Positions 1,281-61,692 of a stretch of DNA of 64,000 bases are shown here, one piece after another. The stretch lies in NCBI GenBank assembly GCA_964187785.1, contig OZ076412.1, positions 21,266,001 through 21,330,000 on the forward strand, written 5' to 3'. This DNA is from Amphiscolops sp. MND2022 (Eukaryota). Each line of letters starts with the position of its first letter. The first letter of the stretch is position 1. The position numbers and the translations under genes were made by a program. A model generated the notes under the pieces. That model was not told the DNA's origin. It worked only from the letters and a program-made list of their open reading frames with translations, and did not search any database.

Positions 1281-2137
1281 GTCATCAGCTTCGTTGACTG
1301 TTTATATTGGATGTTTGAGAAACATGACAACCGCGTATAGACACCAAAAAAAAACTGTTTACCGACTCGCCCCCTCTGCAATATTTAGAACACTGTCAAC
1401 CTAGCAATCTGCGCTTTCGATGTGCACGATCCTTATTCAATTATCTTTGCAATTAATGAAAGGAGAGCAAAAACACGGAAAAATTTGGAAAAAGTATCAT
1501 ACAAACGCTTATATTTGGCTCCATTGACTGATTTGGCAAAACGAACTTTCAAAACTTCAGATTCAAATTCTTCAAAAAATAATTAGAAATATGGAGCACA
1601 GACATCGTCAGATTAAAACAAAGTTTTCCTCCATGTTTTGCGATACTGTGTTGGTTTTAACTAATTCACCTTTTTTGGATCCGGGCAGTACTAAAGACAA
1701 GCACGAACACCAACTCCCCAAACCCCCCACGCCTCACATCCCTGTATATTGAGCGTTTTCAAGTCAGTGAAATGGCTGAAATTGCGAAAAGCATTGGTGA
1801 ACAACTCCATATCAATTCTTACCAATTAAACATTTTTTAAAAATTTTACCTAATTATTCACTAAAATATTTGGAAAGAATTCCTAAAATTTTTCTTGATA
1901 CAGGATTGGCATTTCTGATACGAGTTTCAATTGATATGAGTTGACGCTTTTTGAATTTGATATCTTGTCAGACGGGAGCGGATCACTCACTATGCAGACG
2001 GTTCACTGATTCTCAACGTGTGATGAAATTCATTCTCATAGCGCGGTTAAATTCATTCGCAAATTTGATCGGACAAAGCTACATTCCAAATAATAGTACA
2101 TGTAGAGCGAAACAGCAGCAATCGAGAATTTCGATAC

Positions 2138-2293
2138 CGTAGTCAGCTATGGTCACATACATCTAGTGACCTAAATGCAGGAGCGAAGCGAAGCGGAGCG
2201 ACGTGTCACTAATAGTCCTGCGGCTGGTTTTGACGAAGGCCGACCAGGAGTGGCGCGAAGCGCCGCAGTAGGAGGAGGGCCAAGTCATACAAT
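2138..2293 (+). repeat. Divergent copy of the GCGAAGC-rich core cassette, no TIR shell recognised
   Basis: cgtagtcagctatggtcacatac...ctaaatgcaggagcgaagcgaagcggagcgacgtg matches the core at 32847, 43301 and 47665; the middle differs and carries the hairpin ggcgc-gaa-gcgcc (2252-2264). Confidence 0.7.
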
Positions 2294-32716: not shown

Positions 32717-33146
32717 GGGGGCACGACAACTCTTACACACGACATCTCGTACAAAAACCAAAAGCAGACATGTCGTACAAAAGCGAAACCAGACATTCCG
32801 TACAAAAACGAAACCCGAAATTTTGTGCAATTTATATTTTACAACTTATTATTATAACGTAGTCAGCTATGTTCACATACCCCTAGTGCCCTAAATGTAG
32901 GAGCGAAGCGAAGCGAAGCGGAGCGACGTGCCATTTGGCCATGCCTCAATGTTGCTACTTGGCGAAGCGAGCGAAGCGACCGAGCCATACAACATATATA
33001 CTAACCTCTTCAAATGAATCAAGTTCCATACATATTGGCTGTAACAGCACTGAAAGCTAGTAATTCTGTTGTTTGAGACCTATTTTGCAAATCTGTTCAA
33101 TTTAATTTTGTACGAAATGTCGGTTGTACGGATTGTCGTGGTGCCT
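32717..33146. mobile_element. MULE/foldback-type MITE, shell A, carrying the core cassette (430 bp)
   Basis: TSD agttccgc at 32709-16 and 33147-54; arms built of cacgacaa and cgacat.tcgtacaaaa subrepeats; core at ~32847-33066. Confidence 0.75.
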
Positions 33147-33708
33147 AGTTCCGCATGTTGAAATTAGTGTTCCATTTGGCGAATTCAATTTCGAAAAGTT
33201 AGTATGGATGATTGATTTTTTAAAATTGATAAAGATAATTTTCAGGATTTTGAATAGCTGAACCAACTGCAGCGGAAATGTTTCGAATTTTCGGAGGTCT
33301 TTTCATTTGAGCAAAGAAGAAGAAAATATAAATTATTTATCAGTTTGAAGGCAATTTGTCCGGAAAAAATGCTGTTTTTCATTCGAACGAATTTTTTTAA
33401 ATACAAAAATACATAGGAAATGAATCGTTAATCGACAATTTCCATCAGTTATCGTTTCCCTCTGACAGAAAGAGGGAAAAGTTTCAAGAATGGTTGGTTA
33501 AAATTTTAGATTGAATTTCAAAAATTTTACCTGATTGTTTTCCGAAAGGATCGTACAAAATCACTGAACAACAATCATCGATCTGAAACTAATAATATGA
33601 TAGGTTGATACAGCTAAAGCCGACCTAATTTGGCTAATGTGAATTTCCAACGGTGGGTTTGCTCATATTAGAACGAGCGATAAAAATTGCGGTGTCCTAC
33701 ATTCAGGT

Positions 33709-34186
33709 CAGGGGTGCCTAAAAATTATTGGCCCTCCATTTTCGAGAAAAAAAACAATGCAATCCATTAATGGTAAATTATCAAATTTTCCCTCCTTATT
33801 TCCATTAATGGCAATTAATTTCGCAATTTAAAAGTCATTTAAAGCCTGAGAAACTAAATTCTCATCCCAAAATTTTTCGTTGACCTTTAAGAATAACTGC
33901 ATCTCTAAGTTCATTGGCAAAAGTTTTTGTCGCAAATCTGAGAAGGAATAAGTTGCAGAACTAAAAAACCGTTCCAGAATATTCGAAGTAGGCAGTAAAA
34001 ATTTTAGACTCTCGTACTCTGACACTTTTTGAGACGATAATTGAAGACAATTAAAAATGGACAATTAATTGCAATAGCTTCCGTCCATTAATGGAAATGG
34101 TAAAAATAAAAAATCCCTAAATTTACCCTTAAAAATGGTAAAAAATGGCCATTAATGGAAGTTCCATTAATTTTTAGGCACCCCTG
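33709..34186 (-). mobile_element. hAT deletion derivative (478 bp)
   Basis: TIR caggggtgcctaaaaatta(t/a)tgg; exact 8 bp TSD attcaggt at 33701-08 and 34187-94. Confidence 0.92.
33828..34064 (-). pseudogene. hAT transposase C-terminal dimerisation-domain fragment
   Basis: LPTSNILERFFSSA...RQKLLPMNLEMQLFLKVN fits the P.TS...ER.FS......R..L....E...FLK.N pattern. Confidence 0.85.
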
Positions 34187-35068
34187 ATTCAGGTAATATA
34201 TTATAATAGGAGATACACGATAGTAGATACATAATGTTTGTCGGCGTTTTCAAACTAAAACTATTGAAAGTAGGTCCACGGTCTTTAGAAACTTTCGTAC
34301 CTGAATAATTGATATACTCCCCCCTTAGTGGATTTTGCTACACAACAAGAACGTTTTAGTATACGTCGGTTGAGGTGCATAGACAAGGTAACAAAGCTGG
34401 CTTTTGATGTTTTGACATGTAAAGATTTAGTCAACCATTAGTCATTTTCATATGTAATAATCATAAAACTCAGGCAGGATTACCTAAATGGAATAAATTT
34501 CGGTTTAACTACAGTCAGAGTAATAACTTCGGACGTCGACTGGATTCCAATTTTAGCCTTTTCAAGTAACTGAGGTGTGACTCGAAAATGACGCGAAAAT
34601 GGCAACACTTTTCAAACATCGCTGAGAAATTTTTAGGACACTCGTAAATATCGTCACCATTGTGTAATTAACCAAATAGCAAAAAATGTTACAACGCAAC
34701 TGCTCCAAACCATTGTTTTTTGACTATCTAAAACATCTTTTTTGTCAATTTGACGATTAGGCCATTTGAGCAAGGCGCTGTGCAAAGTTTTATGAATTGG
34801 CATGGTAATTGGTTATTAGTTTCAAGTATTCGTAAGATCAAGAATAAATAGGTACAAATAATCTTTTTTTAGATTTTCTGCCAACCAATAGAATCTTTGA
34901 AGACGATTTGTCATTTGACGATGATGGTTTTTGGCAAGCATAACGAAAATTGCGCTGTTTTATCATCTGCGTCCAAAAATTAGTTAAATGTAGTGTTTAA
35001 ACCAGATCATGGATGGACAATTTTGCATTGTATTTGAAATTAGTTATTAAATAAAACGAGTAAATTTG

Positions 35069-35098
35069 AGTAGTAGTAGTAATAGTAGTAGTAGTAAT
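35069..35098. repeat. (AGT/AAT)n microsatellite
   Basis: agtagtagtagtaatagtagtagtagtaat. Confidence 0.95.
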
Positions 35099-35469
35099 GC
35101 AATAATGGAAATCAACCATCTCCAGCATGAAATTTTTACAGCAATTATTTTAACTGTGAAAAATTATTCAAGTTTTTCAACATTGCAGAAAGATGTTTCA
35201 GCATGGCGATTGAATAGCAGATGATTAAATATTCCGCTGTGGGGGGAATTAACAGAAAAGATCCGAAATTTAATTGATGGTAGACTAAAATTTTACCGGA
35301 GAGTGAGCCGGATGCCGGGTATTTAGGAACACGATACAGCCTTGATCTTTTTGCATTTATAATCTAAAACGTTCCGCTTGACAATAAGAGAAAACTTCAT
35401 TCGAAAGTTCTTCCAAAATTTCTATTGTCCCAATTTATTCAAAGCATCCTTTTTTGACTAGGTTGGTGA

Positions 35470-36273
35470 CCCATGTTGAGCACTCCCTGCGAATCTGTAC
35501 AGATCTGTACAGATCCTGACAGATATTCTAGGATTTGTCGAAAAATAACTAGTGAAAAAACAGTTTTATAATTGAAATTAATTGAATAAAAAGTGCTCTA
35601 CAAGATAAACACGCCTCCTAGTTGAAGTTTTGAAAAAAAGTTTCTGTGCGAATCTGTACAGATCTGTACAGATCCTGACAGATATTCCAGGATTTGTCAA
35701 AAATTAACCATACGAAAATGACCAATAAATTACTATAACGTATTCCAAGTTTCCAGCAATTACTAAAACTACTCCAGTAATCCATGTTCCCGAAATATTA
35801 CAACCACATCACTTTATTAAAACCTCTACCAACCCAGACGGTAGCCACATGTCTAATTACATCCGCCAAAACGAAGTCAATATGGCAGACGAGCCTCTCA
35901 AAGTTGAACATCCACTTCTGGAAAGTTCGAGTGAAATAGATAAATTACCGTGCAAAACCAATAACAAACATTCCCTACACACCAAAATTACTGTGATGGG
36001 GACAAACTTTCCTTCTCAAGAATTTTGGGACATGGAGAGTTTCCACTGACTGAGAATTGGTCAGCTAAAATACTTGTTGAAGAAGACCAAAAATGCAATA
36101 CATGCAATGAAAAAAAATTTCCTGAAAAATCTGTACAGAAAATCCTTGCACATCTGTAAAGATCCTTGCAGATCTGCAGTTGTCCTTACGTAGCAGTGGC
36201 ACGATCTTTACAGATCCTCAAGGAAAAAAGGCTCACAGATCTGTACAGATTGTCAAGGAAAGCTCAACATGGG
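35470..36273. mobile_element. CMC/EnSpm-type non-autonomous element, copy 1 (804 bp)
   Basis: TIR cccatgttgagc / gctcaacatggg; 2 bp TSD ga; agatctgtacagatc subterminal repeats; interior homologous to 42170-42990. Confidence 0.75.
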
Positions 36274-36335
36274 GATTTAACGTCAGCAATGAAAATTTGG
36301 TAGTAATTTAATTATTTGGAGCCACTTCTACCGCG

Positions 36336-36824
36336 CAGAGTTGGAATCGGGTCATGATTTTCTACCCGAGCCCGTTTCAAAAATCCTAACGCGACCAGAT
36401 ATTTTTCAACATTTTTAATACCCGATGAAAATGACCGAAAACGAATTTGATACCCGAAAGTAAATTGTAAATGATAATCAGGTATAAGCATCATGCGAAT
36501 TCAAAAATCCCACTTTTTACAACAGAATTCAAAAATTCAACATCAGAGTTTTTTGGCAGACATCTGGGCTCTACGAGCAGTGCGAATAAGACCCGCTTGT
36601 CTGAAATCTCGTTCACTTTGAGCACTAGTTGCTTGCGCTGAGAATATTTAGGCGAGCAAATAAAAGAAATCAATAGCGGAAATTATATAGCCCAGTTTAA
36701 TGTATAAATTTTCGATTTATTTTCCGAATTGTTAGACACGGCCCGAAAATTTAAGCTCGAAAAAGCCCGGCTATAAGCCGGCCCGGCCCGGCAACATTTA
36801 ATCATGTGCTTGGTTCCAACTCTG
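36336..36824. mobile_element. Probable hAT-type MITE
   Basis: 11 bp TIR cagagttggaa / ttccaactctg; acccg and gcccg subterminal repeats; TSD not convincing. Confidence 0.5.
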
Positions 36825-37589
36825 TTGCCGGCTACGTAACATGATAGAAATGTTTGAATTGGCTCCTGCAAAGTAGTTTTGAAGTTTGGTGCGTTTTTGA
36901 GTTGTAAAGCTCTGAAAAAATCCTTGCAATGTTTTATACAGACAAATAGGAGACCGAAGCGGGAATACTGTTCAAATACTGTTCACAGGGGATTTATGAT
37001 GCATTTTATCGAGGAAATTTGTAGGATTTTTGAGTCATTGATTTTCTAATCTTTTCGAATCAAAGGTCAAATTAATGAACCCACTTATCGAAGAAAATCG
37101 CATGGATTTTGCAACAACGACAAGTCAATGGGTGAACATTTTCTATGGCCGAATTGCTTGATCTTAGGTTTTAGTGTAATCGTCGTCAGCTTATGAGAAA
37201 TGTTGCAGACTTAGCCAGACGTCTTGCTAAAAATAATTATCTGTCGAAAGGGAAATGCATGTAACTGTTAATTTAGTATCGATTTTGCATATCTCAGCTA
37301 ACAACATTACATTTCTCATTCGTGAAATTGCGAATAGTGTTTGCAAGGTATTAGTACTTATTAGAAAAGAACTCGAAACAACATTATCTCAAATTTGGGT
37401 TTACGGGCCGGAGTCAAATAGTATTCTTTATCTATCAAACTTAGTTCAGTTGCACAATAATTTCACAGAAGTTTGAGGTTATTTGCATAACAGCTGAGGC
37501 GTGTTTTACTTCAGAGAAGTTTAACATGACGATGATTTCTTACACAGGTCAACTTTAAGACCAACTTCAACAGTCCAACGATGGAAATC

Positions 37590-38283
37590 TTTTTAGTCGG
37601 CGCTTCATGAATCATGAAGTGAAACGCGACTATTATAGTGACTCTTTCTTTCTTTCAATCCACACGAACTGACCAAAATAGTTCTTAAAAATTCTACAAA
37701 ATATTATTGCACCAAATTGCACCATTTGGCCTTGCGAACTGAACCAAAAAGGTTTTTCGTTTTCCCGCGTAACATACTATACCGGGCGAGACCAAAGGGT
37801 CCCCCATTTCAATTTTTTTCGGCACAGCGAGACTTTCTTTTTCGGAAAATTTTTTTCCCCAAAGGGTCCCCCTTCAATTTTTTGCTGTTTTGCGACAGAA
37901 TGGATGTTGAAAAATCCCAAAGGGTCCCCCCTTTCAGTTTTTTTCGGCATTGTGAGATTTTTTCCGAAAATAAAAAAATTTCCCCCCTTCAATTTTTTGA
38001 TGTTTTGCGACAGAATGGATGTTGAGAAACCCCAAAGGGTCCCCCCTTTTAGTTTTTCGGCATTGTGAGACCTTTTTTCTAAAATTTTTTTCTCTCCAAA
38101 GGGTCCCCCCTTCAACTGCGACAAAAATGTTGACAATTTCAGAAGTGTCCCCCCTTTTAGCGCGCCACTCGGTCCACTTTTTTGGTTTTTCGATTTTCGA
38201 GTACTGTAAATTGACACTTGGAAGTCCTTTTGCTATTTTTGAGCCTTAGATATGGCGCCGACTTGGGCCGGTCCCGGCTTGTT
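37590..38283 (+). mobile_element. Helentron/HINE-like element, copy 3
   Basis: 5' tttttagtcggcgc; 3' gcgccgact plus hairpin gccgg-tc-ccggc plus ttgtt; internal gggtccccc subrepeats. Confidence 0.8.
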
Positions 38284-38353
38284 AATCATTATAGTTATTT
38301 CATTTTTAGGTTCAATTTGATTTACAACCAGTAGAAAAACATTTTAGACCTAC

Positions 38354-38565
38354 GAAAATGATTGATTGCTTATGAGTGAACCGTCGGAAGTTTCCAAAGA
38401 AGTTGCTGAAACTTCTATGAAAGAACAAATGTCTTCAGACCGTCTCTCAGTTGTTTTGAGATTAGCGTAAAAGTCAAAAATGCGTACTGGAAAGCTAGTG
38501 ATTTCGTCTAGGGTTTTTAGAACGTCTTGAGCCACAAAATTGTTCAAATATTTCACAAAAATTGC
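38354..38565 (-). CDS. Candidate isolated exon (212 nt) of an unknown gene
   Basis: Stop-free frame AIFVKYLNNFVAQDVLKTLDEITSFP... bounded by ttttAG and GTAGGT; no neighbouring exons found. Confidence 0.22.
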
Positions 38566-39965
38566 CTAAAAATGTCATAGAAATTTTGGTTTTTTGGCTA
38601 TTTTGGGGTCATTTCGAGGCACTTTTTTAACATAAAACAGCAGATATCTCTTTAAAAAGCATTCTGGATGACTACCGCAACCGTCGTTGAACGTTTCTAA
38701 CATTATAACTCACAAAAATCTAACTATTGCATGAAAATTTGAAAGCATTAAAAGCTTTCCGACAAATTTGGGGTCATTCTGAGGTGTTTTTGTAGCATAA
38801 AAGTACAACGTTCTCCTCAAAAAAGCGTAGTATATAGGTAGTGCTTTCGTCGTTGAACTTTCTGTACCTCCTAGCCCACGAACTCTTGCGAAAATACACG
38901 AAGATTGAATGAAAGACGTAAAAATTCGAAAAATAATGGAATTTTTGACCATTTTGGCCATGCCCAAAAACGTTCGAAAATCTCTTGAAACACATTCCGG
39001 ACGAAACTAAGTTTGTGGAAGTTTATATCTGTGGACGAAACTCTTAAATTTGGTTATAAATTTGGAACATGGCAAACTTTGGAAAGAAACGCGACTCAGT
39101 AATTTTCTTTTCACATGAGAAAAATAGGCAGAAAAAAACAAAAAAATTGCCTTAATTTGGATCAAAATAAGAGTAACTTTAGCTCTAGGAACTTTTTGTC
39201 AAACGGGTGTTTTTAGAAAAAATGCGCTTCTAATGTTTTCGACTGTGATATGTCAGTTCTTCAACTTTTGGTACCCTAATGTATTTTTAGAGGGGCAATA
39301 AAAAGATCTCAAAATATCTTGAACATTCGAAAAGAAAATGAATAATCTTTTTCTGCTCTTTGAAATTGGCAGTTCGGGCAAGGGATGAAACTGTAAGCAT
39401 AGTTTGCAAGTTTTTGATTTTCTGTCTAGTGCAAGTTTGTGGATGTCATTTTTTCAAATACACCGGACAGTACAAAAGGAAGCCGATAGGTCTCTCCACA
39501 ATATTTTGGAATGGAATTATCGTAGAGCAAGTTTTGCTGAGACTGCTATCCAACAAACGTTCAACATTTTTGTTCTGTTCCAGTCACGTTTTCCAGACTT
39601 TGTGATTCAACGTTGTATAAATATTTTTCGAAAGAAATTCAAAGCTTTGGCAACAAGGCGCCCGCTGAGAAGTCGGATATTTTCCCCCGAAATAAAAGAA
39701 ATACGGCATTCCCTTGAAGCTGGAGCGTGGAAATCTCTACACCTTCCATTTCATTTCACACTTTGCTTTGATAAACTGGATATTCAAACTTACAAAAACA
39801 TTCGAAGACTATCCGATTTCAGATTATGGTATTTGTATCATCATTCCATTTTCGAACTCCGAATGTAGCAATACACACCAAAAGATCCAGAACTTGAACA
39901 GAAAATGCATCGCAGTGTCAACATTGAAAAAAAAACATTTTTGCTGAGTTTGTGCAAATAAAGAC

Positions 39966-40380
39966 TTTTTAGTCGGCGCTTTTTTAAAGAAAAGAGTCGA
40001 CTATAGTCATGGCTTTTCGTCTGTTTTTTTTTCAATTTTTTTGGATACACCTGAAGTGACCAAAATAGTTCCACCAAAAGTTCTACAAAATTTTAAGGAC
40101 GCCAAAATGTACATGTTGGCCCAAGGATCTGAACCAAAAAGGTTTCCCGCGTAACATACAATAATACCGGACGAGACCAAAAGGCCACCCTTTCAGTTTT
40201 TTTCGGCAATGCGAGACTTTTTTCCCCAAAGGGTTCCCTCCTTTCAATTTTTTTCGTCATTGTGAGACTTTTAAAAAAATTTTCGGGTGCTGTAGAAGAG
40301 AATACTTTGACACTTTGAAGTCCTTTTGCTATTTTTGAGCATTAGATATGGCGCCGACTTGGGCCGGTCCCGGCTTGTTT
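39966..40380 (+). mobile_element. Helentron/HINE-like element, copy 4
   Basis: Same termini as copy 3, with fewer internal subrepeats. Confidence 0.8.
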
Positions 40381-40806
40381 AATTTGAACTCTAATAAAAG
40401 GACTCCTATATCAAAGCATATTTTGTTATTGAAATCAGCATATTTTGTTCATAATCATGGAAATATTCAAAAATTGTATAGAAATTGCTCAAAACGGTCG
40501 AAAATCGAAAGACTTTCAATTTTGTGGGAGGCATCATTGCATTTTTGAATAATCACATCAAATTCATTACCTGAGAAGCATGTTGAATAGCTCAATTGGG
40601 GGAACTCTCAACGTGAAACTCGGGATAGTCTCATTCTTGAAAACATTCAAAAACTGAATGAAAATGGCAACTTAATTCTCAACAGAGAGGCGAAGCGGTG
40701 CTTCGCAACACATGACGAAGACGAATCATGGCTAGACGAATGCCGAAAAACCGTATATATTCAGTCGCATGCGTATATATTCAACAGTTCAACTTTGTTC
40801 AATACC

Positions 40807-40878
40807 GTCCCTATGGCACAGTGGTCAACACTTATGCCGTGCAATCGGGAGGCTGCGGGTTCGAATCTCTCTGGGGTT
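40807..40878 (+). pseudogene. tRNA-derived sequence (tRNA pseudogene or SINE head)
   Basis: A-box-like tggcacagtggt and B-box ggttcgaatc at tRNA spacing; acceptor and anticodon stems pair poorly. Confidence 0.5.
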
Positions 40879-41477
40879 CTGGCTTTTGTCTAAAAGGCGC
40901 TCATTATGAAGTTGACTATAGTGGAAAAAAACTTATTTAGCAGGACTGCAATGCACAATGACTTCGTCATGTGCAAAAATCAGAAAACTATTTTTTTCGT
41001 ATCACTTTAAGGCACGTTCTTATCCATAAATGTTCGTCGTAAAGCGTACCAAATGACTTTCGCTTGCATTTTGGAAATCTGTGAATGTTTGAAATTCTCG
41101 GAACATCGGAAAAGATTACAGAGAATGCCTACCGTAGTCAAAAATTCAATTTTTTTAACGAGTTTGATGTAACTTTTAGGCTTTTTCCAAAAAAACAAAG
41201 GTCAGATTACTTCTGTAACCGCTCATAGGTTAGCTCGTTGGTTCTGCGCTGAACTTTTTGGATGATCTAATTTTTCGAAACGTCCGAAAACTGTATGAAA
41301 CATGCCCAAACGAGGCCAGATAGTATTTTGCGATTGTTCTGATACACTTTCTTAACAAACACTTCTTTTAGATATCTCCCGAGTGTAGAAACTCCTGAAA
41401 CTCATGATAAGAATCTTGCATTTTCGATAAACTCTTGGTAAGAATCTTGGCAAGATTCTTATAAACAGCGACAAGAA

Positions 41478-41943
41478 CAGGCTTGGGCAATAACTAATTA
41501 TTAGAAAAATTACTGCAATATAATATTTGCAAAAATTTTTGAGAGATTGAAATTATTATTGCTAGTCTTCAATATATTTTCGAAAACAAAAAAGCAGAAA
41601 CTGGAAGAAAAAGTAGAGTGGGTTTTACCGACATCGAATATTGTCGAGCGATCTTTCAGCTAGGCCAAGGCCAATCTAACACTAGAACGCAAACACTTGG
41701 TCCCGATGCACGTGGAAGAATTTATGTTTTTGAAACTCAATGCCCAATTTTGGAATTTTGAACTAGTTTCGCAGATTGCTTCATTAACGTTTTAAACACA
41801 ATAAGTGTTTTCCTTTGAGCAATAAGTGCAACAATTTATTTTCTGAAAAAAACCTATTGTAATATTTTATTTTTACTATCTTGATAATGCAATAACTTAT
41901 TTTGAACACCAATGTAACTGCAATACAATATTACCCAAGCCTG
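41478..41943 (+). mobile_element. hAT deletion derivative (466 bp)
   Basis: TIR caggcttggg(c/t)aata; TSD gacaagaa / gacaacaa (7 of 8 match). Confidence 0.85.
41601..41795 (+). pseudogene. hAT transposase C-terminal dimerisation-domain fragment with one in-frame stop
   Basis: LEEKVEWVLPTSNIVERSFS*AKANLTLERKHLVPMHVEEFMFLKLNAQFWNFELVSQ. Confidence 0.85.
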
Positions 41944-42169
41944 GACAACAAAATGTACCATCTTGCAAGATCTTGCCAAAAGTTTCAGGAAAAAGCTAAC
42001 CAAAATGAATGAAACGAAACAAAAACCGACGCATACTGTGGCTTGATCAGCGTACATAGTATACCGCAGCTGTTCACGCAACCAATGATTGACATAACCA
42101 ATCAAGCTATAACGTCCTGAATTTCATTACTTTGTGTTGTCCTGTAATCAACACTTCGAAGGATGATAA

Positions 42170-42990
42170 CCCAGGTTTTCGATCTTTGCGAATCTGTGCA
42201 GATCTGCAGAACTTTTGCAGATCTTTGCAGATATGCGCAGATTCGAAAAAAAACTGACGTACTCAGAAACACAATAAAAATCCCACAGCGATGTCAAATG
42301 AATAATAAAAATGTTCAAAACTGGAGAGAAGTCTCATTTATGTCAAAATGATGAAACTATTTTTTGTAGAAATCTGTTCAGATCTGTAGAGATAACAGAT
42401 CTTTACAGAGCCAAACAATGACCAATAAATTACTATACCGTATTCCAAATCAACAGCAATTACTAAAAATACTCGAGCAAACTATGTTGCGGAAATATTA
42501 TAACAACAACACTTTATCAACACATCGACCAACCCAGAAGGGCGCCACATGTGAAGTTGTAGCTACCAAAACGAAGTCAATATGGCAAACGAGCCTCTCG
42601 AAGTTGAACAACCGCTTCTGCAAAGTTTGAGAGAAATAGATAAATTAGTGTATGACCTATACCAAATATTACCCAGACACCAAAATTACCGTGATGGGGA
42701 CAATATTTCCTTCTCATGAATTTTGAGTGATAGAGAGTTTCTACTGACTGACCTTAGGTCAGCTAAAATACTGGATAAAGTAGTTGAAGAAGTCCAAAAA
42801 TGCAGTATATTGGTTCTTTAAAAGTTGCAGAAAAACATTTCTGCAAAAATCTTTAAAGAAAATCTACACACTTCTGTAAAGATCTTGCAGATCTGTATGG
42901 ATCTTCAAGATTCAGTTCAACGGTCGTTGCGGAACCCTGCAGAAAAAATCCTGCAGATCTGCACAGATTCGCAAAGATCGAAAACTTGGG
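42170..42990. mobile_element. CMC/EnSpm-type non-autonomous element, copy 2 (821 bp)
   Basis: ~40 bp TIR ccca(g/a)gttttcgatctttgcgaatctgtgcagatctgcag; 2 bp TSD aa. Confidence 0.8.
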
Positions 42991-43562
42991 AACGTCTCGG
43001 GAATAACGTCTAAAGGAATAACGTAAAAAGTTTAATGTAAAAGGATTGGGAATGAGCATGACTGAGCATGACTTGGCTTTAAATTGTATTCCTGTTTCCC
43101 GAACAATAGCAAAGCAATTATAAACAAAACTAATGTTGCAAATTTAATGTGGAATTCCCACACAGCAGAAGTCTCATACAGCAGAAAATGAAAATTCGGT
43201 CCCATACAGCAGAATATTTGTTTATGCTACAATCTGATTGGCTAAAATTTGAAATCGATTGATTTCACTAAGTTGAAAACGAGTGTCGGATTTTGTCGGA
43301 ATTATTATTATAACGTAGTCAGGTATGCTCACATACCCAGTGCCCTAAATGCAGGAGCGAAGGGAAGCGGAGCGACGTGCCATATGGCCATGCCTCAATG
43401 TTGCTACTTGGCGAAGGGAGCGAAGCGACCGAGCCATACAACAAATATGCTTACCTTTTAAAGAAATCAAGTTCCATACATATTAGCTGTAACGGCACTA
43501 AAAGCTAGTAACTTGAATTCTGCTGTATGGGACCAAATTTTCATTTCTGCTGTATGAATAGG

Positions 43563-45717
43563 CAGGGGTACCGCAAAATTAATTGCCATAATATTCCCTA
43601 GCTTCCATAAATAATTTTCATGGATGACAGCTGTCCATAAATTATTTCCATAATCTTCTCACAAAAATAAATAATGGCAATTATTTTTTGAATTAAAAGA
43701 AATAATACACAAGACAACTGAGACAAAAAGTACATTTACAATTATACCAGCGTAGAAATTAAGTCAGCGTCCCAAAAAGTTTTGTTGACGAACAGAAAAA
43801 GTGCAAACTACGTGCAAGCGAACAATGTGCAAGCGAAGATCGTGCAAGCCTATCACTGAACGCAAGCTCGATTTTGATTGGCTGCAGCCCTACAGCTAAC
43901 CGCTAACAGCCAGACTGGATGCTGTGAAAATAATGGCTGCCATAATTCTAAGAAATCCATAAATTAATATCTCCACAACTACGCGTACCAGAGAAACGAA
44001 CTATAGCGCATTTGAAAGGTCTGGTACCGGGCTTGCATTTTGGTCAGGTGAGCCCCTGTCGCCGCGTTCCCCTTCTTCACAATTTTTAGTTTCTTTTTCC
44101 GGTACAGCCGCTGCGGGGGCTTGTAGTAACAACAGAATATTATTGCGGTTTGTTACACCAGGACTTGTTGTGGAAGGGTATATGGTTGGTATTTTCTATT
44201 GATCAAAGACTTTTGAGAAAACTGGATTTCGTCAAAGATTGAATTCTGGGAAAACATAACCATTTTTTGTGCAAAAAAACTCGATTTTCTCAGTTTTGGA
44301 GACATATTCACTTTTTATAATGCTTGTGCCATTCAAGCCAATCTAAGTACCAAGGATTTGTTAAAACAAGCCGGGACCGGCCCAAGTCGACGCCATATCC
44401 AAGGCTCAAAAATAGCAAAAAGACTTCCAAGTGTCAAGTATTCTCTTTTACAGTACTCGAAAATCAAAAAATTTTCGAGAAAATTACATACTCAAAAAAT
44501 GGACCGAGTGGCGAGCCTGGGCCCGCTAGCGCGAGCCCCTGGCGCGCTAAAAGTGGGACACTTCCGAAATTGTCCACATTTTTGTCGCAGTTGAAGGGGG
44601 GACCCTTCGGAGAAAAAACAAATTTTCGAAAAAAATCTCACAATGCCGAAAAACTGAAAGGGGGACCCTTTGGGATTTTAAACACCCAATCTGTTGTAAA
44701 ATATCGAAGAAATTGAAGGGGGACCCTTTGGAGAGAAAAAAAAATAGAAAAAAAAGTCTCACAAGGCCGAAATACTGAAAGGGGGGACGCTTTGGGGTTT
44801 TTCAACATCCATTTTGTCGCAAAACATCAAAAAATCGAAAGGGGGACCCTTTGGGGAAAATTTTTTTTTCGAACCAAAAGTCTCGCAGCCGAAAAAAAAA
44901 GAAAAGGGGGAACCTTTGGTCTCGCCCGGTATGGTATGTTACGCGGAAAAACAGGAAAAACCTTTTTGGTTCAGTTCGCTAGGCCAAATAGTGCAAGTTG
45001 GTGCAATAATATTTTGTAGAACTTTTAAGAACTATTTTGGTCAGTTCGTGTGGATAGAAAAAAAAGAGTCACTATTATAGTTGCGTTTCACTTCATGAAG
45101 CGCCGACTAAAAATGTGCTAGAGAATATAGGCTACTGGCAAAGCGGATTAGAAATTGAAAAAAAGTAGGTCAGTTATAGCGGCAATCGCATCAGTGTGAG
45201 TCGTTTTGTCTCTAATTCAGGGGTACCGCAAAATTAATTGCCATAATATTCCCTAGCTTCCATAAATAATTTTCATGGATGACAGCTGTCCATAAATTAT
45301 TTCTATAATCTCACAAAAATAAATAATGGCAATTATTTTTTGAATTAAAAGAAATAATACTACACAAGACAACTGAGACAAAAAGTACATTTACAATTAT
45401 ACCAGCGTAGAAATTAAGTCAGCGTCCCAAAAAGTTTTGTTGACGAACAGAAAAAGTGCAAGCGAACAATGTGCAAGCGAAGATCGTGCAAGCCTATCAC
45501 TGAACGCAAGCTCGATTTTGATTGACTGCAGCCCTACAGCTAACCGCTAACAGCCAGACTGGATGCTGTGAAAATAATGGCTGCCATAATTCTAAGAAAT
45601 CCATAATCTATGGCCATACTCCTTTGTCCAAAAATTAATTATTTTTATGGAAGGCCCCAAAAAATAAATTATTTATGGCCATTATTTCCATAATGAATTA
45701 TTTTTGCGGTACCTCTG
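43563..45717. mobile_element. Composite hAT-type element with a duplicated left end
   Basis: TSD tgaatagg at 43555-62 and 45718-25; TIR caggggtaccgcaaaa / ttttgcggtacctctg; the left ~400 bp is repeated at 45218-~45605. Confidence 0.82.
44363..45113 (-). mobile_element. Helentron/HINE-like element, copy 5 (longest)
   Basis: aaaacaagccgggaccggcccaagtc terminus, multiple gaaggggggaccc subrepeats, distal gcgccgactaaaaa. Confidence 0.8.
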
Positions 45718-45778
45718 TGAATAGGCCCCAATTTAATTATTTTCTTGACACTCTTGATAAGACTCTTACCAATGGTGA

Positions 45779-46052
45779 CTATTCATAGCTCCGAATTCAA
45801 AATCTAGTGCCATAGCTCCGAAATTTTAAACGTGTTATTTTCACGCGTAAAATCCGCGCAAGTTGACAAAATATTCACAAGTTGTTTGCTTTGCATCTTC
45901 CCCGAACTGTCAATGCCCCTAGTTGCCGCAGTGGTTTCTTTAAAAAAGCGATTTGCGAGTGCGATTTATTATTTACCAAAATAATTAAAATTATTTTTCG
46001 GAGTTATGATACTCGATTTTGTTTTCGGAGCTATGAATATTCGGAGCTATGG
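45779..46052. mobile_element. Small foldback/MITE-like element
   Basis: Inverted arms tattcatagctccgaa..caaaatc.agt..cata.ctccgaaa; no TSD resolved. Confidence 0.55.
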
Positions 46053-46251
46053 GAAGCAAGGCTGGCAGTCATTCACGGCGTGAAAGTCCGTGTCATCTGT
46101 GTGTAATCTTCTGATTGGTTAATTCCGTGACGCGCTGCGTGTGATTGATCAACTTGTTTGATGAATCGCGTGTAAATAAATGGTCAATAAACAACATTGA
46201 AAATGAGATTCAAGATGTTAAGGATTTCTGGCGTGCACACCAAACTTCAAT

Positions 46252-46693
46252 GATTACGTCCCAAATGGCATAAATGCAAATGACATAAATGCAAATAACA
46301 TAAAAATAAATTGATTCCCAGAAAACATAAAACAATTAAGCGCTTCTGATTGGTTGAAAATTGAAATTCAACCTTGCGTTATTTTCTCGCTTGCGCTGAA
46401 TCATTGTTACAGCCAATATGTTGGAACTTGATTTATTTGAAAAGGTTTGCATATTTGTTGTATGGCTCGGTCGCTTCGCTCCCTTCGCCAAGTAGCAACA
46501 TTGAAGCATGGCCATATGGCACGTCGCTCCGCTTCGCTTCGCTCCTGCATTTAGGGCACTAGGGGTATGTGAACATATCTGACTACGTTATAATAATATT
46601 TTTTTATGTTAAATGGGAATTCAATGTACTTTTATGTTTTCTGGGAATTAATTTATTTTTGTTATTTGCATTTATGTCATTTGGGAAACCACC
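46252..46693. mobile_element. MULE/foldback-type MITE, shell C copy 1, carrying the core cassette (442 bp)
   Basis: TSD acttcaat at 46244-51 and 46694-701; ~70 bp arms cccaaatgacataaatgcaaat...ttcccagaaaacataaaa; core on the minus strand. Confidence 0.88.
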
Positions 46694-46723
46694 ACTTCAA
46701 TGTCCACCCTATACAGTTTTTGT

Positions 46724-47151
46724 GGAGGCTATTCATTGAGTCGAAATTAAACAAAAGTATTCAGAGCGTCGAAATTAAAGTTAGCTATTCATCGCGTCGA
46801 AAAACTCCATATCAGCGATTATTTTCAGGTTATTATTTGAAGAGGTTAGCATATTTGTTGTATGGCTCGGTCGCTTCGCTCCCTTCGCCAAGTAGCAACA
46901 TTGAGGCATGGCCATATGGCACGTCGCTCCGCTTCGCTTCGCTCCTGCATTTAGAGCACAGGAGTATGTGAACATAGCTGACTACGTTATCGTAATTAGT
47001 TCGATGCTGTGTAGCACACAAATTCACCAAATTTAATTCTTTCCTATTTCAATTTTCAACCAATCAGAAGCGTTCGATAATTATTTTTCGGCGCGATGAA
47101 TAGCTTGCAAAATTTCGACGCTTTGAATATTCGACGCTTTGGGAATCCGCC
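46724..47151. mobile_element. MULE/foldback-type MITE, shell D, carrying a shortened core (428 bp)
   Basis: TSD agtttttgt (9 bp) at 46715-23 and 47152-60; arms gcgtcgaaatt...gctattcatcgcg.cgaaaaa; core at ~46833-46991 on the minus strand. Confidence 0.78.
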
Positions 47152-47599
47152 AGTTTTTGTGAGAAGTTTGCTTTCTTGGTGGGAGCTTCGGCGAATGTTG
47201 AGCGAGCGATTTCGCACGTCAACAGCATTCTGTCAGGCGACAGACTATCTTTTGGCGAGGAAAACTCAGAACAAACGATGTTTTTATTATTTAGCACCGA
47301 AAATTGTTTTATTTCTCTGTGAAATACCCATGTAATCAAGTAAAATCCGTGAAAATGAGCATGCAATTTTAGATATTTTCCGTGAAATACTGCCAGCCCT
47401 GATGCGAAGTCACCATTACCAATATTCCTATCAAGAAATTCAAGAGGTTTGCAAATCTTGGCAAGAGTTTGAAGATACTTCGAACTGGGTTTTTACAAAA
47501 GCGTCCTGGACCGCAGTTTTTCGTCTTGCAACTTTTTGGATATTCTAACCCACGAAAATTTCCGAAAAATACAAAAATTGCATAAAAAGTCGGAGAATC

Positions 47600-47917
47600 C
47601 CCACAATGTGATCGGCTGAATTGAATTCACTAAGTTGAAATCGCGTGTTTGATTTTGTCGGAATTATTATTATAACGTAGTCAGCTATGTTCACATACCC
47701 CTATTGCCCTAAATGCAGGAGCGAAGCGAAGCGGAGCGACGTGCCATATGGCCATGCCTCAATGTTGCTACTTGGCGAAGGGAGCGAAGCGACCGAGCCA
47801 TACAACAGATATGCTAACCTTTTAAAGAAATCAAGTTCCATACATATTAGCTGTAACAGCACTAAAAGCTAGTAATTTGAATTCTGTTGTATGGGACCAA
47901 ATTTTCATTTTCTGCTG
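47600..47917 (+). mobile_element. Truncated shell-B element with the core cassette
   Basis: Nearly identical to 43240-43550; right arm partial, left arm missing. Confidence 0.75.
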
Positions 47918-48085
47918 GTCATCATCAAAAAAGGCCAAAAATCTCCATAACTACATATCGCACGAAACCAAGTTTATATCAGTTGAATTCTGTGGGAGAA
48001 GCCCTTCAATTTGGTAAGAAATTGGAACATTGCAATTTTGGGGGAAAATGGGGCTGTTTGTATTTTTCCTTTCCCTTATGGAAAC

Positions 48086-48106
48086 AATAATAATAATAAT
48101 AATAAT
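48086..48106. repeat. (AAT)7 microsatellite
   Basis: Seen directly. Confidence 0.95.
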
Positions 48107-48931
48107 CCAGGGACTAATGAAAAATTCTCTGCAAAGCACGTCGAAAATGCCACTTACTTTTACAGCAACTGAGAAAAGCACCGCTGAATCTGAATTGAGA
48201 AAATTTCACTGTCGAAATTTTATCTTTAATTCTTGTCGTCTATTTTTATGCTTCGCGCAGTGAAAATCAACAGTCGTCGATAAAACTTGTTATAATTTAC
48301 TCAATAACAATGAACTGTAGAGAAATAATGAACATTTTCAGAAATAATTTTCGGCAATAAGTTGGTGAAGCTACCTCCTATTCAGTGGACCATTTATCGG
48401 TCATTTGGACCCTTCGAAATCGAAGATTATTCGTGACTTCGGAAATTGTGGTGGTAGCCATTGTAGCATTTCTGTTCAAAGCACACATATATGACGTCAC
48501 TACAAATACAGCATAGCTCTGTGTGCTACGCTGAGCTGTTGAACATTTTGTTGCTGGTGAACGTGTAAAGTATTGCATTATGGCGACAGAACCACTTTTG
48601 CACATTGCATTACGTTCTTAGCGTACAGTACAGTAACGAACAGAGTTCACGTTCGGTTGCATTGTGCGTTCAATTACACGAAGTTCTTACGCCGAGAAAT
48701 GTAGACCATTAAAACAGTTCGTAACCACGACATCAGCAGCTCTTGCCTTTTTTCATTTCGTTTTATAAACATGTTGAACGAGAAGAAAAAACTGCTAATA
48801 TTCTTCATCTAAATTTGAAACTTGCACTTTGAAGGTTGAAAATAATACTTGAAGAATTTTAAAACTTCTTAACATCAGTGAGATACTTATCCAAACAGTG
48901 TTATGACAACATCACTGCACCCATTAAATTG

Positions 48932-49378
48932 GATTACGTCCCAAATGACATAAATGCAAATGACATAAGTGCAAATAACATAAAAGTAAATTAATTCCCA
49001 GAAAACATAAAACAATTAAACGCTTCTGATTGGTTGAAAATTGAAATTCAACCTTGCGTTATTTTCTCGCTTGCGCTGAATCATTGTTACAGCCATTATG
49101 TTGGAACTTGATTTATTTGAAAAAGTTTGCATATTTGTTGTATGGCTCGGTCGCTTCGCTCCCTTCGCCAAGTAGCAACATTGAGGCATGGCCATATGGC
49201 ACGTCGCTCCGCTTCGCTTCGCTCCTGCATTTAGGGCACTAGGGGTATGTGAACATATCTGACTACGTTATAATAATATTTAATTTTTATGTTAAATGGG
49301 AATTCAATGTACTTTTATGTTTTCTGGGAATTAATTTATTTTTATGTTATTTGCATTTATGTCATTTGGGAAACCACC
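48932..49378. mobile_element. MULE/foldback-type MITE, shell C copy 2 (447 bp)
   Basis: TSD ttaaattg at 48924-31 and 49379-86; same termini (gattacgtccc ... gggaaaccacc) as copy 1 but a different TSD, so an independent insertion. Confidence 0.88.
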
Positions 49379-52889: not shown

Positions 52890-55800
52890 AATTGGTTCTG
52901 TAACAACAACTTTTTAGTCACATAAAAACAGTTTCCTTGGTTTGGTACACTACCGTATCTATTCAGTTTATTTATATTTCGGTTTGACCGTCTGAGAATA
53001 GATTTTGAATTCTCACCCTGAGGCATTTCTCCGTCAGAACGTAATTGTAGGGAATCATTCTCGGGATCAGTCCGGAGTTGCTCGTATCTGCAGTCTCTCT
53101 CCGACGTAACATACTCTCTTACGGTTTTCTCCGGTATCTCTTCCTCGTCATCACCATCATCATCTTCCTAATCTGTTTCGGTGCGCTTACTATTCTGGTC
53201 GATTCGGAGCTTGCGTTCAGAATATCGCGCAGTATCTCGTTCAACTTCTCGTATTTTCTGTCTAGTCCTCTCAGGCAATGACGGTTCTTTGGGGTTATCA
53301 TCGCTAATACTGCTGGTACCGTCTCTCTTCAGTGTCTTTTATCACTCTGGAAAAAAGGTCCCGAAATTATTATTCGGTGTAAAACTTTTCCCATATGTTT
53401 TTGCGGTGTTTTCAGTCCCGCATATTGCGGTTTGTATTTTTGATTGAAATCTCCCTTCTAGGGATTTTCGGTTGTGTCTCTTTTCATTAAAGTTGAAAGG
53501 ATATCTAATCGGTTTTTTCTTCCTCGGTGATTTGGTCTCCGAAGCCAGTTGCCGTTCTTCGGTCTTCATGCGGGCCATTACCATACGATTGGTGATTTCT
53601 CCTTCAGCGTCCCTTCCGACATATCTCGGTTTTTTGGGCTTGTTATGTGCTAAAACAGACTTTTCTACCGTGATGTAGTTCAAATGGCGTTTTTTCTGTC
53701 CCGTATGAATTGGGAATTGCATACTACTTGGTTTCTACGTCCAGTTAAAGTACTTCCATGTTTGCCAATAGTAAATTTTTCATAGTTTGTTTTGCTCTTC
53801 GTACAATACCGTTTCCGGTAAGCATTCGTGGTGGGTAGTATTGATCTTCTACATTCCGAAACTTACAAAATTCCTTGTACTCGGACGATATGAATGCCCC
53901 CCTAAGTCGGCATTAATTCTCTTGGGAATTCCGTAAAATTTACAATTTGTCAGGAAATTTATGACTTCTTTTGTTTCGGCTGTCTTTACAAATTTTTGCT
54001 GTCGGCCATTTGATAAACCGATCTATTGCTATTAGTGTTTGAGATTCTCCGTTAATTTTTCTTGTTCTGTAGTTTTCCGGTGAAATCTATTTGTAATTCT
54101 TGTCCTGGTTCGGTTAGTTTTTCTAACTTCCCGTGTTGATTTTTTTGGAATTTGGTGTTCGCCGTTCTTACCTGTGGCGAGGCATGCAGTGCAGTCTTTA
54201 ACTTTGTGCTCTATACCTCCGCATCTACGACCACCAAAAGATTTTTGCGTCGGATAGCATTTTTGTTGTGCCAGGGTGACCGAAATCTAGTATATCGATC
54301 AGTCTTCTTCTCAAGTCGATTGGTACGGCAATTTGGTCGTCTACGAAGACTAGACGCCACCGGATTGATAGCTTGTCTAAAACCGGTCTGTATCCTTCCG
54401 GGGCCGTGTCGCTTTCTTCTCTGCGCATGCTTGCTCGGATTCTTGTCGTCTCTGGATCCGTTGCCGTTTTTGAAACAAGAGTCTTCAAGTCCAACAGAAA
54501 ATTAAATTCGTCTTTCTTTGTGTTGTCTCCGGTCAACTCCTTGTTCTCCGGTAATTTGCCCACTATGTGATTGATTTGTATATAGTGAGCCTCTTTTCCA
54601 TCAGTGTGGTATTCGCTCAAGTTGACGATTCGTAGGTTATCACCCCGCATAATCACACTGTCTTCTTCGGTGTCCACCGTATTTTGGTCAGCTTCTACTT
54701 CTCTTTCTTCCGGAGCTTCCGGTTCTGCACCTTCGTCGATGATTTCTATCGTTTGATAGCCCCCGCCTATCCGGTTTGCTCTAGGTGTAAGTTCTGCGTC
54801 GAGTTCTGCAATCTCTTCCCAGCTTCTCTTGTTTGGCCTTGACGGTACAAATATAGACCTTTGTGACTGTGGATCATATCTCTTCCGCATGGTTCCCGGT
54901 CTAGCATGCGTTTTTCTCCTTTCCACCAGTCTTGGTCTCCGGGCGTGTTTTTCTTCTTGGGAGGCTCCCCAGTGATATAAATTTGCTCGGTTCATTTTTG
55001 TTTCGTAATTTTTGAATTTGAACTACTTTTCGCGGTGCTAATACCGGACTGCCCCGGTGTAGTATTCTCTTTTGAGATAAGTTTGTTCTCGAATGTTGCA
55101 TTTGTTTGTGATTGGTTCTTCTTTTGCTCATTTTCATTTCGGTTTTGCTTTTGTTCCTTTTCGGTCTCTTCTGTTCTTGAATTTGATTGGTTGTCGAACA
55201 GCGAACCATCTTTTGCGTTCAATGCGGCGTATCCGGTAAGAATGTTGATTACATTTTTTTCTTCGTATTTTTCTTCTATCGCGGCTCCCCCTACCGGATT
55301 TCTGCTGAGAAAATCGGTAAATTTTAAGTTACTGTGGGCGATATGTTGAACTGCGACGACAAAGTGAGCCAATCTATCCAGCCACCAGGTTTGACTTGCG
55401 CTATATTGTTGATTGCTTCGGTTCCGTTTTATTATTGGTTCTGATGCTTAGTGCTCTGTGTACAAGTGTATTTTCTTTCCGTAAACGTAAAATCCGAATT
55501 TTCTAACCCGCAAACAACTGCTAGCAGTTCCAATTCACCGATAGAAAAGTTTTTTTTCGGTATCCTTCAGATATCTGCTACCGAATGCAATCGGTTTTAT
55601 GTCTCCGCTGTCTTGTTTTTGCCAAAGGTTTGTTTCTCTATCTGTTCATCGAAAGGCAATATTGTTACCAGTATCAATTATGAATTCTTTTTGCATCTCG
55701 TTTATTTTTATTTTCGCTGTGTAATGTTTCTGTTTTTCTTCGATGTTCTTTATTTCTTCTATATTGTGTATACTTTCATCCGATTCGCCGAGGGATTCAA

Positions 55801-59849: not shown

Positions 59850-61692
59850 TATGTGAGCCTAACCGGTTTCTTCTCAAAGCACTCCGGTTCTGCTTGTTTT
59901 GCAATCGATAATCTCGAGAGCCATGGGTAATCCCTCACAAAGTTCGAGGATTTCATCGAGTTCACAATTGTGATTCCAGTTTCTCATTACCGCAACCTGG
60001 TGTATGCTTTTGCGCAAAAGTTTATAAATCTGAATGACACATTTTTCTCAACATATGTTTTTACAAGAGGTATTATTTGCAATCTTAGTTTTAAGCAGTA
60101 AGTTAATAACGTTTTTTTAAATCAAAAGTTTAGTAGTTAAAACAGTATAATGTACAAGTTGAGTTCAAAAGTGAGTTGTGCATGGTTCGAAACAGTTTCA
60201 CATTTTTCTTCATTCAGTGATCCCATCGTGATTCATACAGTTGCTTTGACTTTTAACACAGTCACATTGTTGAAGATGTCTGTGATTTGTTTGGTTGCAA
60301 TTTTGCCAAGGTATTTTGACAATATTTCGCACTTACCAAATTTCGCATTGTTCCCGCTTCTCAAAACTTTCGCAGATGAAGCAGAGCGGATGTTCTCTGA
60401 CATTTTGCTTCCATGGAAATTTCCTTGTCTCAAAAGCAATTGAGCATCATCCACAGCCATTTGATGATAGATTCGATCGGAATCTTTGATATTCCGAAGC
60501 GTTGAGTGCGAAGTTTTAGTCTGTTTCCCCACCTATACTCACATCTGTTTGTTTTCCAAAAGCAGTTCGTATATGTCTTTTTTGTGTCGGATTCAGGTCT
60601 AATGAGGCTTCAGTTTTTTGCTCAGTGATGTCCATGACGTTGATGTTCACCTGCTGGAAAACTTTTGGCAACTCATTTTTATACTTGACAATCTGATTTC
60701 ACAAATCCAATAGAAGATTTCTCGAAGCTACATCGGTTGACTTGTTGTTCAGGCCCAGCGGACCAAAATGCCCACTAAGTCTAGGGTTTTGCAAGCCATG
60801 ATCTCAAACATCAAAGTGCGCCATCCTATTTCTCCCTCCTTCATAATTCTTTCCATAAATTCTAAAGCAACCAGGCTATTCTTACTGCCACACAGAGCTT
60901 GTTTGGAAAAAAATTGAATTCTGGAACCACTTTCATGTCCAAAATTTCTTTTGCCTTAAAACGTGCAGAAGCTTCAGAAGAAGAGAAGTTTTCATAAAGA
61001 ACGCTTTAGCGTGTAGACTCAGATCTTTGCTGAAATTTTTTCCGGCATCTTCAAGTTTTTTTTAAACTTTGGAATTATTCGCATTTTCAGATTCCTCGTT
61101 GAAACCGAGATGTATACCTAACACATTCGCTCTGGATGATACCTTCTTCTTGAAATGTCAGCTAATTTTAGTACTGCGCTTTTTTCTTGGTTTATTTAAA
61201 ACTGAGTACTTTTGCTAAAAACCTGCAGTCTTCCAAAAAGAATCTCAAGGTCTTCCCCGTGCTTGAAAGTCTTCCGCATATGCTATCGCACTTTTCTCTG
61301 TATTGTGAAAAAAAAATAAGATCGTAATGCTTCCATTAGTGGTTCCAAAGCGAAAACAAACAATAAAGCTGGGAGCGGACTTCCTTGCCGGAATTCTCTT
61401 GTTTTTTTTTGTTTGGATGTCAGGTAGACAATTTATCTTCATGCTAGCAGTTGTGTTCCGGTATATGTTTTCCACGAGCTTTACAACGTTGTCAGGAAAT
61501 TTTTTCAGTATTTGAAGCATGAACGTTCTAGCAATTCTATCAAATGCTTTCGTGCAGTCCAACCGCACTAAGCACCAGCTGTCACCGTTGATTAACACTC
61601 TCTGCTGAATATCCTATATGGCTCTGTGCATGTTTCATTTTTCATATATGAAAGTTGGTTATCTCCAACTAGGTTCTCATTTTTCTTGATTC
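59850..61692 (-). mobile_element. Decayed L1/Tx1-like LINE ORF2 (RT); continues for a few codons past the Tc1 insertion
   Basis: LDCTKAFDRI...FPDNVVKLVENIYRNTTASMKIN...AYAED; the frame VLSSRIKKK..LVGDNQ spans the TA insertion site. Left boundary approximate. Confidence 0.8.

Follow-up and report, generated by a model that had tools for sequence, protein, structure and literature searches.

A core sequence shared by short inverted-repeat elements

The window analysed here, a 64-kb stretch of the Amphiscolops sp. MND2022 genome (positions 21,266,001 to 21,330,000 of contig OZ076412.1, assembly GCA_964187785.1), contains several short transposable elements that enclose one and the same core sequence between terminal inverted repeats (TIRs), whose arms form a shell around the core, and that are flanked by target-site duplications (TSDs). 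Using the core of one of these elements, A, as blastn query, six full core copies of ~195 bp each were identified in the window, with pairwise identities of 87-99% over the part common to all six, in addition to one 80-bp fragment of the core's 5' part (Table 1). A first-pass annotation had placed one core inside shells A, B, C (twice) and D; a script reproduced its coordinates, its element lengths (430, 418, 442, 447 and 428 bp) and its 8-9 bp TSDs exactly, and its claim that one core resides in several independently mobile TIR/TSD elements is upheld. The core copies that it listed are likewise present, to which we add a degenerate second copy of B (B2) and the fragment at 2134-2208.

We further examined 12 non-redundant loci of European Nucleotide Archive (ENA) assembly ERZ25074608 (L001-L013, L004 being a duplicate of L003), which together with the window make up 307 kb. 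These loci were reached via a spurious open reading frame (ORF) through the core (window:46365-46559:+), which matched 41 predicted 'proteins', all from this assembly. At each core match, a TIR with an exact duplication of 8 or 9 bp beside it was sought, and the final table comprises 22 elements, all with exact duplications and recognisable TIRs. Twelve arm families (A, B, C, D, H, I, J, K, M, R, T and U) enclose core 1, so named to set it apart from a second shared interior described below, in agreement with the modular system proposed previously, which extends genome-wide. Judged by their N-terminal parts, which continue into the arm beside the core, the 41 ORFs suggest that there are further families. 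[quoted passage not shown] Also consistent with this was a blind scan for GG...CC elements over the first 247 kb (the window and L001-L010 without L004), which returned 16 elements as opposed to none in shuffled sequence. Among about 24 core copies, 19 lie in resolved shells, and the remainder are truncated or have no resolvable shell, none with termini of its own; shells were sought and not obtained at L009 9981-10177, L012 10217-10356, L011 16561-16708 and window 2134-2208. The first-pass annotation would have given way to a predominance of naked cores with fixed ends of their own, which is not what these copies display.

Abundance was estimated by placing Logan contigs of four source-organism runs on window positions 45740-48920. 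For run X1, summed word depth was 73 for unique sequence, 65-160 thousand for the arms of B, C and D, and 0.4-2.4 million for bins of the core, figures that hold as orders of magnitude only. The core is about 10-30 times more abundant than any shell of the window, on the order of 10^4 copy-equivalents, and its density in readable sequence, ~1 copy per 10-27 kb, agrees with this estimate. At the 5' edge of the core (46597, 46997 and 47652), many contigs part company and continue into heterogeneous flanks, and most copies must therefore lie in other contexts. Two other organisms also had core 1 31-mers in their runs, at shares of 0.29 and 0.18, while a core 21-mer gave no match in the scanned metagenome and viral contigs, and a text search of the literature returned no occurrence of the core sequence.

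Closer examination of the core indicated that its identity between families, 92-98%, equals that within families, as opposed to 70-82% in aligned columns of the arms; pooled within families, the core is 98.4% and the arms 96.3% identical. A maximum likelihood tree of 20 cores is star-like and clusters by shell (9 label changes, the minimum, with none of 200 shuffles as low). Where the core begins and ends depends on the family, the 5' limit ranging over query positions 7-38 and the 3' limit over 156-229, and the ORFs of the core carry no Pfam domain in the precomputed annotation.

Several identities considered for the core were rejected. Folded as single-stranded DNA, it reaches -19.3 kcal/mol compared with -22.4 kcal/mol for shuffles (z +1.0), and is no better structured than shuffled sequence. 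The window has no Rfam match at gathering score, and the core only chance-level ones at E up to 10; a by-eye resemblance to 5S rRNA was dropped, Rfam being without a match for 5S and tRNA included. Nor does the core agree with a short interspersed element (SINE) or RNA gene, for which an RNA polymerase III head, a tail and a flanking TSD are expected and which would duplicate the target at the core, or with a Helitron or HINE, which would have fixed termini, a 3' hairpin and AT/TT insertion without TSD, given that its ends vary and that no duplication flanks it.

Element length proved to be less uniform than the window suggests. The 19 core-1 elements span 321-474 bp (mean 395, standard deviation 47), and within family M alone three copies of 321, 370 and 419 bp occur, owing to unequal numbers of GACATTACGCCCAA units in the arms. 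The spread of 321-474 bp therefore removes the common length constraint, for which a broad length distribution had been named in advance as contrary evidence; that elements of the window are all close in size, at 418-447 bp, is due to their small number.

Arm families, terminal scaffolds and superfamily

The four shells of the window had been regarded as unrelated, their arms sharing no obvious sequence. To compare arms, the outer 70 nt of each were aligned semi-globally, with unrelated MITE ends for comparison. Shells B, C, D and E, the last a coreless relative of D, are colinear homologues (z 3.5-10, against -1.7 to 2.8 for the unrelated ends), such that only A differs among the window shells, with GGGGCACGACAA and GACAT-TCGTACAAAA repeats. 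The four homologues have a terminal dozen bases in common, GGnGnnTTCCCA at one end (26 matches in the window as opposed to 7.9 expected) and GGnGnCTATTCA at the other, behind which lie equally spaced repeats of a 12-mer, CA(T/A)A-N6-GAA, whose six middle bases are CAGCAG in B, AGCGTC in D, AGCTCC in E and ATGACA in C. Parts follow the same order in B and D: TTCCCA end, repeats, CCAAT block, spacer, core in 5' to 3' orientation, repeats and TATTCA end. B, C and D also share the 30-bp CCAAT block, and the CCAAT-like motif that the first-pass annotation had located at the inner arm edge of these shells is well founded, CTGATTGGnTnAAAnTTGAAAT having four matches in the window (B1, C1, C2 and D) against 0.19 expected. 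Each of the five CTGATTGG sites of the window belongs to a MITE, in which it faces inward at a distance of about 50-95 bp from one terminus.

Taken across the sample, two terminal scaffolds underlie the arm families, which vary on them. Group 1 is defined by GGnGnCTATTCA / GGnGnnTTCCCA termini and CA(T/A)A-N6-GAA repeats, and group 2 by GG-N4-5-GGAC(A/G) ends, which are common to H, J, M and O; A and T look like variants of the group 2 scaffold. Within a scaffold the terminal dozen bases are kept, while a subterminal 10-16-mer is specific to the family and repeated 2-6 times per arm. These repeats are putative transposase binding sites; that they differ by family while the terminal scaffold is conserved looks like the trace of transposases diverging in specificity. 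The core tree does not separate the two groups.

The first-pass annotation had considered these elements Mutator-like, and likenesses to Mutator-like elements (MULEs) and their MITEs do exist: the TIRs are long and contain subterminal repeats, foreign DNA is captured internally, and about half of the copies have 9-bp TSDs. MULE TSDs are expected to be 9-11 bp long, typically 9. Here, in contrast, more than half of the duplications are 8 bp (12/22, the other 10/22 being 9 bp), both sizes occur within families D, H, J and M, and no MURA-type transposase was linked to the elements in the sequence sampled. The mixed 8/9-bp TSDs, GG termini and long TIRs are a better fit to Merlin, to which the elements may tentatively be assigned from these terminal features. 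As summarized in PMC8101967 (citing Feschotte 2004), Merlin hallmarks are an 8- or 9-bp TSD, a conserved terminal 5'-GG and TIRs of 24-462 bp; correspondingly, every TSD here has one of these two lengths, 36 of the 44 element ends start with GG and arms are 70-160 bp long. Unlike the present case, an interior shared across families is not among the traits described for Merlin, and no IS1595-type transposase was linked to the elements in the sequence sampled. Other superfamilies fit less well: hAT elements have strict 8-bp TSDs and YARNG termini, at odds with the 9-bp TSDs (10/22) and GG ends found here, only the host element F fits hAT, and the TTAA duplications and CCYT termini of piggyBac and of the CMITEs contrast with TSDs of 8-9 bp and varied sequence.

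In their behaviour, the elements nevertheless resemble the CMITEs of Acropora (Wang et al. 2010, PMC2872659), six families with different TIRs and a 75-bp interior more conserved than these TIRs, as is the case for the core and arms here. CMITEs are ~100 bp long and have 13-14 bp TIRs, TTAA duplications, piggyBac CCYT ends and ~1,600 copies; their authors left the interior's origin open and suggested that it has a role in transposition. Common to both systems are several TIR families around a conserved interior, with only the outermost terminal bases shared, as well as tandem copies and the creation of new elements by insertion (PMC2872659). By contrast, the elements described here are 320-475 bp long, with 70-160 bp arms of subterminal repeats, 8/9-bp TSDs and GG ends, and they comprise at least 12 families, ~10^4 copies and at least two cores, together with donor-arm relics showing how the interior moved. 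The system works like the CMITEs without being a member of them, and belongs to another superfamily.

Relics of donor arms and a proposed origin of families

Evidence that families arise by the re-shelling of existing interiors comes from elements that retain parts of another family's arms. In element A, the interior of B is retained from near ATTTTGT, across the core, as far as the first repeat of B's right arm; similarity between the two continues to 33089-33095, and the right arm of A scores z 5.7-6.5 against that of B. This bears out the earlier suggestion that a B-type interior with a relic of B's arm was enclosed in A. A second case joins the two scaffold groups: M (group 2) was built around D (group 1), and carries D's variant 5' edge AATTACGATAA, a D-type 3' end and ~60 bp of D's inner right arm. 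The junctions of M with D lie at AATTACG and TAATTTC, both of which are also part of M's own repeat unit, and the interiors in A and M are joined at 6-7 bp microhomologies. From sequence comparison, the donor-arm stubs and microhomologies appear to record an order of events, B before A and D before M. H probably holds the B interior from the CCAAT block to GCACT, and C, whose 30-bp CCAAT block does not differ from that of D, has its core turned the other way with respect to this block than B and D do.

Exchange of interiors is not confined to core 1. A second shared interior, core 2, of about 185 bp, is GC-rich with a palindrome (AAGCGGCCCCAAGGGGCCGC), and was found in shells N and O as well as in three further contexts (Table 1). 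N has a mosaic interior, consisting of core 2 and an inverted 50-bp piece of core 1. Also identified were coreless relatives with TSDs: E, a C-like element in L002 (C'), and an arms-only version of M (mini-M; L007:12823-12948, 126 bp, with flanks AACAGAGAA and AACAGAAAA and a 9-bp duplication with one mismatch). Arms can therefore move without a core, and mini-M suggests that M arms are mobilisable without any interior. Nesting is frequent as well: C1 and D lie in F, which itself lies in E; B1 hosts G, C' hosts I1, and core 1 has received N twice.

Together, these findings suggest that core 1 is probably the shared interior of a very large and diversified population of non-autonomous MITEs, whose new families originate by chimerism. 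One MITE's interior, whether or not it still has stubs of the donor arms, would be enclosed by the arms of another family at short microhomologies, either by template switching during gap repair after excision or by insertion of one MITE into another followed by (microhomology-mediated) deletions, two routes that present data cannot tell apart. The chimera would then be amplified by the transposase of the family that donated the arms. The likeliest reason for the recurrence of the same core may be its abundance: with ~10^4 copies, no other sequence would be as often available as ectopic template or nesting partner. The simplest account is offered by a published mechanism, abortive gap repair in which the template is switched at microhomologies of 6-8 bp, as described for the chimeric or stuffer-bearing Gnome, Elf and Goblin elements of Aedes (PMC3814204) and discussed for the P-MITEs of Anopheles (PMC1562414). 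Likenesses to these systems include an interior unrelated to the autonomous partner, 6-8 bp junction microhomology, hybrids, and inversion or import by template switching; the difference is that each family there has its own interior, whereas here a dozen families have one interior in common, which exceeds every other repeat module encountered in abundance.

Several points weigh against formation by chimerism. Only two junction pairs were resolved, and microhomologies of 6-7 bp in AT-rich DNA are weak evidence singly. D and I are homologous end to end, with arms 82% and cores 98% identical, and this pair could be explained without a chimera, by descent with fast arm change or by gene conversion of the core; alternatively, it may reflect a switch inside homeologous arms. 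The extra loci were found through an ORF lying in the core, and the sample is biased to core-bearing elements as a result; the depth figures are sums over contigs and not true copy numbers; and arm searches in 259 kb found MITE-sized elements only, and no autonomous element with matching arms.

Re-shelling may also have been accompanied by selection. It is possible, if rather doubtful, that the core, with the CCAAT block, is a selected cis-acting module (a transposition enhancer, a host-factor binding site or a promoter) whose carriers out-amplify other elements. The central ~120 bp are kept in every chimera while donor arms are trimmed to varying extents, the core is slightly less diverged than the arms within families, its 31-mers recur in the two other organisms, and AaCCAATCAg (the reverse complement of cTGATTGGtT) recurs in B, C, D, F and a copy in L009, with ~85 bp between it and one of the ends. 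This motif fits RRCCAATSR, the NF-Y CCAAT consensus. The authors of PMC2872659 made the same proposal for CMITEs. On the other hand, retention of the core is partly a matter of ascertainment, the loci having been found with it; E, C' and the 126-bp mini-M carry TSDs without a core; the quite different core 2 does the same job in N and O; the core folds no better than shuffled sequence; and its lower divergence may reflect misalignment in repetitive arms or gene conversion. We consider unlikely a mix-and-match version, in which core 1, with its NF-Y-type CCAAT block, and core 2 are portable amplification modules recaptured by transposon lineages with diverged subterminal motifs, through element-level selection and not mere abundance; were it true, such selection would explain the same cassettes in a dozen or more shells.

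Descent from one ancestral core-bearing MITE, whose arms changed fast in concert with diverging transposases while ectopic gene conversion kept the core uniform, accounts for the colinear arms and equal repeat spacing of B, C, D, E and I, for the end-to-end homology of D and I, and for the star-like core tree. We nonetheless regard it as improbable, since the two scaffold groups are bridged by the B-arm stubs in A and the D-arm stubs in M, C has the core in inverted orientation, the ends of the core differ by family, and parallel change would have been needed in all 4-12 repeat units of an element. It is very improbable that the core is itself a small mobile element, Helitron/HINE-like or a SINE, with a tendency to land centrally in foldback MITEs. 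Many contigs diverge at the core's 5' edge, which is fairly constant at (A)ATTATTATAACG and on the opposite strand resembles an (AAT)n-like tail; insertion of MITEs into cores does occur here; and in A and B GCTGTAACAGC followed by CTAGT lies near the 3' end, which recalls a Helitron end. Against this, the 3' end varies by more than 70 bp between shells, homology of A and B continues past CTAGT and that of C ends before it, no duplication flanks the core inside any shell, Rfam gives no match, 5S and tRNA included, and the 19 resolved copies lie in shells, with none of the rest having ends of its own.

Chimeric origin bears on a wider question, given that the birth of MITE families and their rise to tens of thousands of copies are largely unexplained. 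Here, one genome holds a dozen or more families with one interior, and arm stubs and microhomologies make the birth of families directly readable. The same arms with core 1, core 2, another interior or none constitute a natural experiment on internal sequence and amplification. Repeat annotation of this genome will mis-cluster the elements unless cores and arms are modelled apart.

Features of the window and of the sampled loci

Coordinates of the elements are collected in Table 1.

Table 1. Core-bearing elements, related elements and motif sites. Unprefixed positions refer to the window; core matches are from blastn and lie on the strand given.
Feature	Positions	Strand	Core match	Details
Core 5' fragment	2134-2208	+		80 bp; joined to different GC-rich sequence; shell not resolvable
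Shell A element	32717-33146	+	32850-33050	430 bp; TSD AGTTCCGC; boundary and TSD confirmed by script
Shell A interior	32846-33095	+		B-type, including relic of B's first right-arm repeat
Shell A arms	within 32717-33146	+		GACAT-TCGTACAAAA repeats
Shell B element B1	43149-45729	+	43306-43498	418 bp without insert; TSD AATTTAAT; CCAAT block 43234-43255
B1 ends	43149-45729	+		left GTGGAATTCCCA; right (reverse complement) GGGGCCTATTCA
Element G, nested in B1 right arm	43564-45717	.		2,154 bp; 9-bp TSD TGAATAGGC; AGGGGTACCGCAAAA-type TIRs
Shell E, coreless relative of D	45774-46056 and last 5 bp 47410-47414	+		288 bp in total; TSD (C/A)TTACCAAT
Shell E ends	45774-47414	+		GGTGACTATTCA and GGTGACTTCCCA; carries AGCTCCGAA repeat; right terminus split by F
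Element F, hAT-like MITE	46057-47401	.		CA[A/G]GGCTGGCAGT ends; TSD ATG[G/C]GAAG; ~458 bp without nested elements; host of C1 and D; own CTGATTGGTT
Shell C element C1	46252-46693	-	46405-46595	442 bp; TSD ACTTCAAT; CCAAT block 46346-46367
Shell D element	46724-47151	-	46835-46990	428 bp; TSD AGTTTTTGT; core 46835-47004; CCAAT block 47046-47067
B2, degenerate B copy	47592-47917	+	47668-47862	left arm internally deleted, right tip gone, no TSD
Shell C element C2	48932-49378	-	49085-49275	447 bp; TSD TTAAATTG; CCAAT block 49026-49047
CTGATTGG sites	46111-46118, 43234-43241, 46346-46353, 47060-47067, 49026-49033			inside MITEs
Core 2 in shells N and O	L002:18830-19339, L002:19473-20028, L006:13051-13593			N, GGTTACCAGTCACTTGGCTTAAT; O, GGGTTCCGGACGTTTCGGCAC
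Core 2, three further contexts	L002:18350-18531, L003:9332-9461, L006:9291-9467

The D core of the window has the variant 5' edge AATTACGATAACG and a short 3' end. Two full D elements also lie head to tail in L007 (9636-10056 and 10062-10489), 5 bp apart and with identical cores, an arrangement comparable to the tandem copies of CMITEs. Between 45774 and 47414 the window contains a four-level nest, in which C1 and D lie side by side in F, and F lies in the right terminus of the coreless E. Contig joints that skip from 46252 to 47151 suggest that copies of F without C1 and D are present elsewhere. Both N copies of the 307-kb sample are inserted in core-1 copies, at different sites (L002:19473-20028, TSD TGCCATAT; L006:13051-13593, TSD ATGTGAAC). 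Core 1 makes up ~1.5% of the sample, yet takes both insertions, and MITEs may thus have a target preference for cores (n=2).

Element G contains ~380-bp internal direct repeats (about 43565-43960 and 45220-45600) and a minisatellite built on GGGGGACCCTTTGG, with a similar block near 37.7-38.2 kb of the window (37640-38250). Pfam scans of the window ORFs returned no clear host gene and only remnants of mobile elements, located at 54225-55372, 61248-61613 and 62120-62835 and comprising retroelement sequence, namely an ORF resembling an integrase zinc finger and a weak match to RVT_1, together with a decayed Tc1/mariner copy (weak HTH_Tnp_Tc3_2 and DDE_3 matches).

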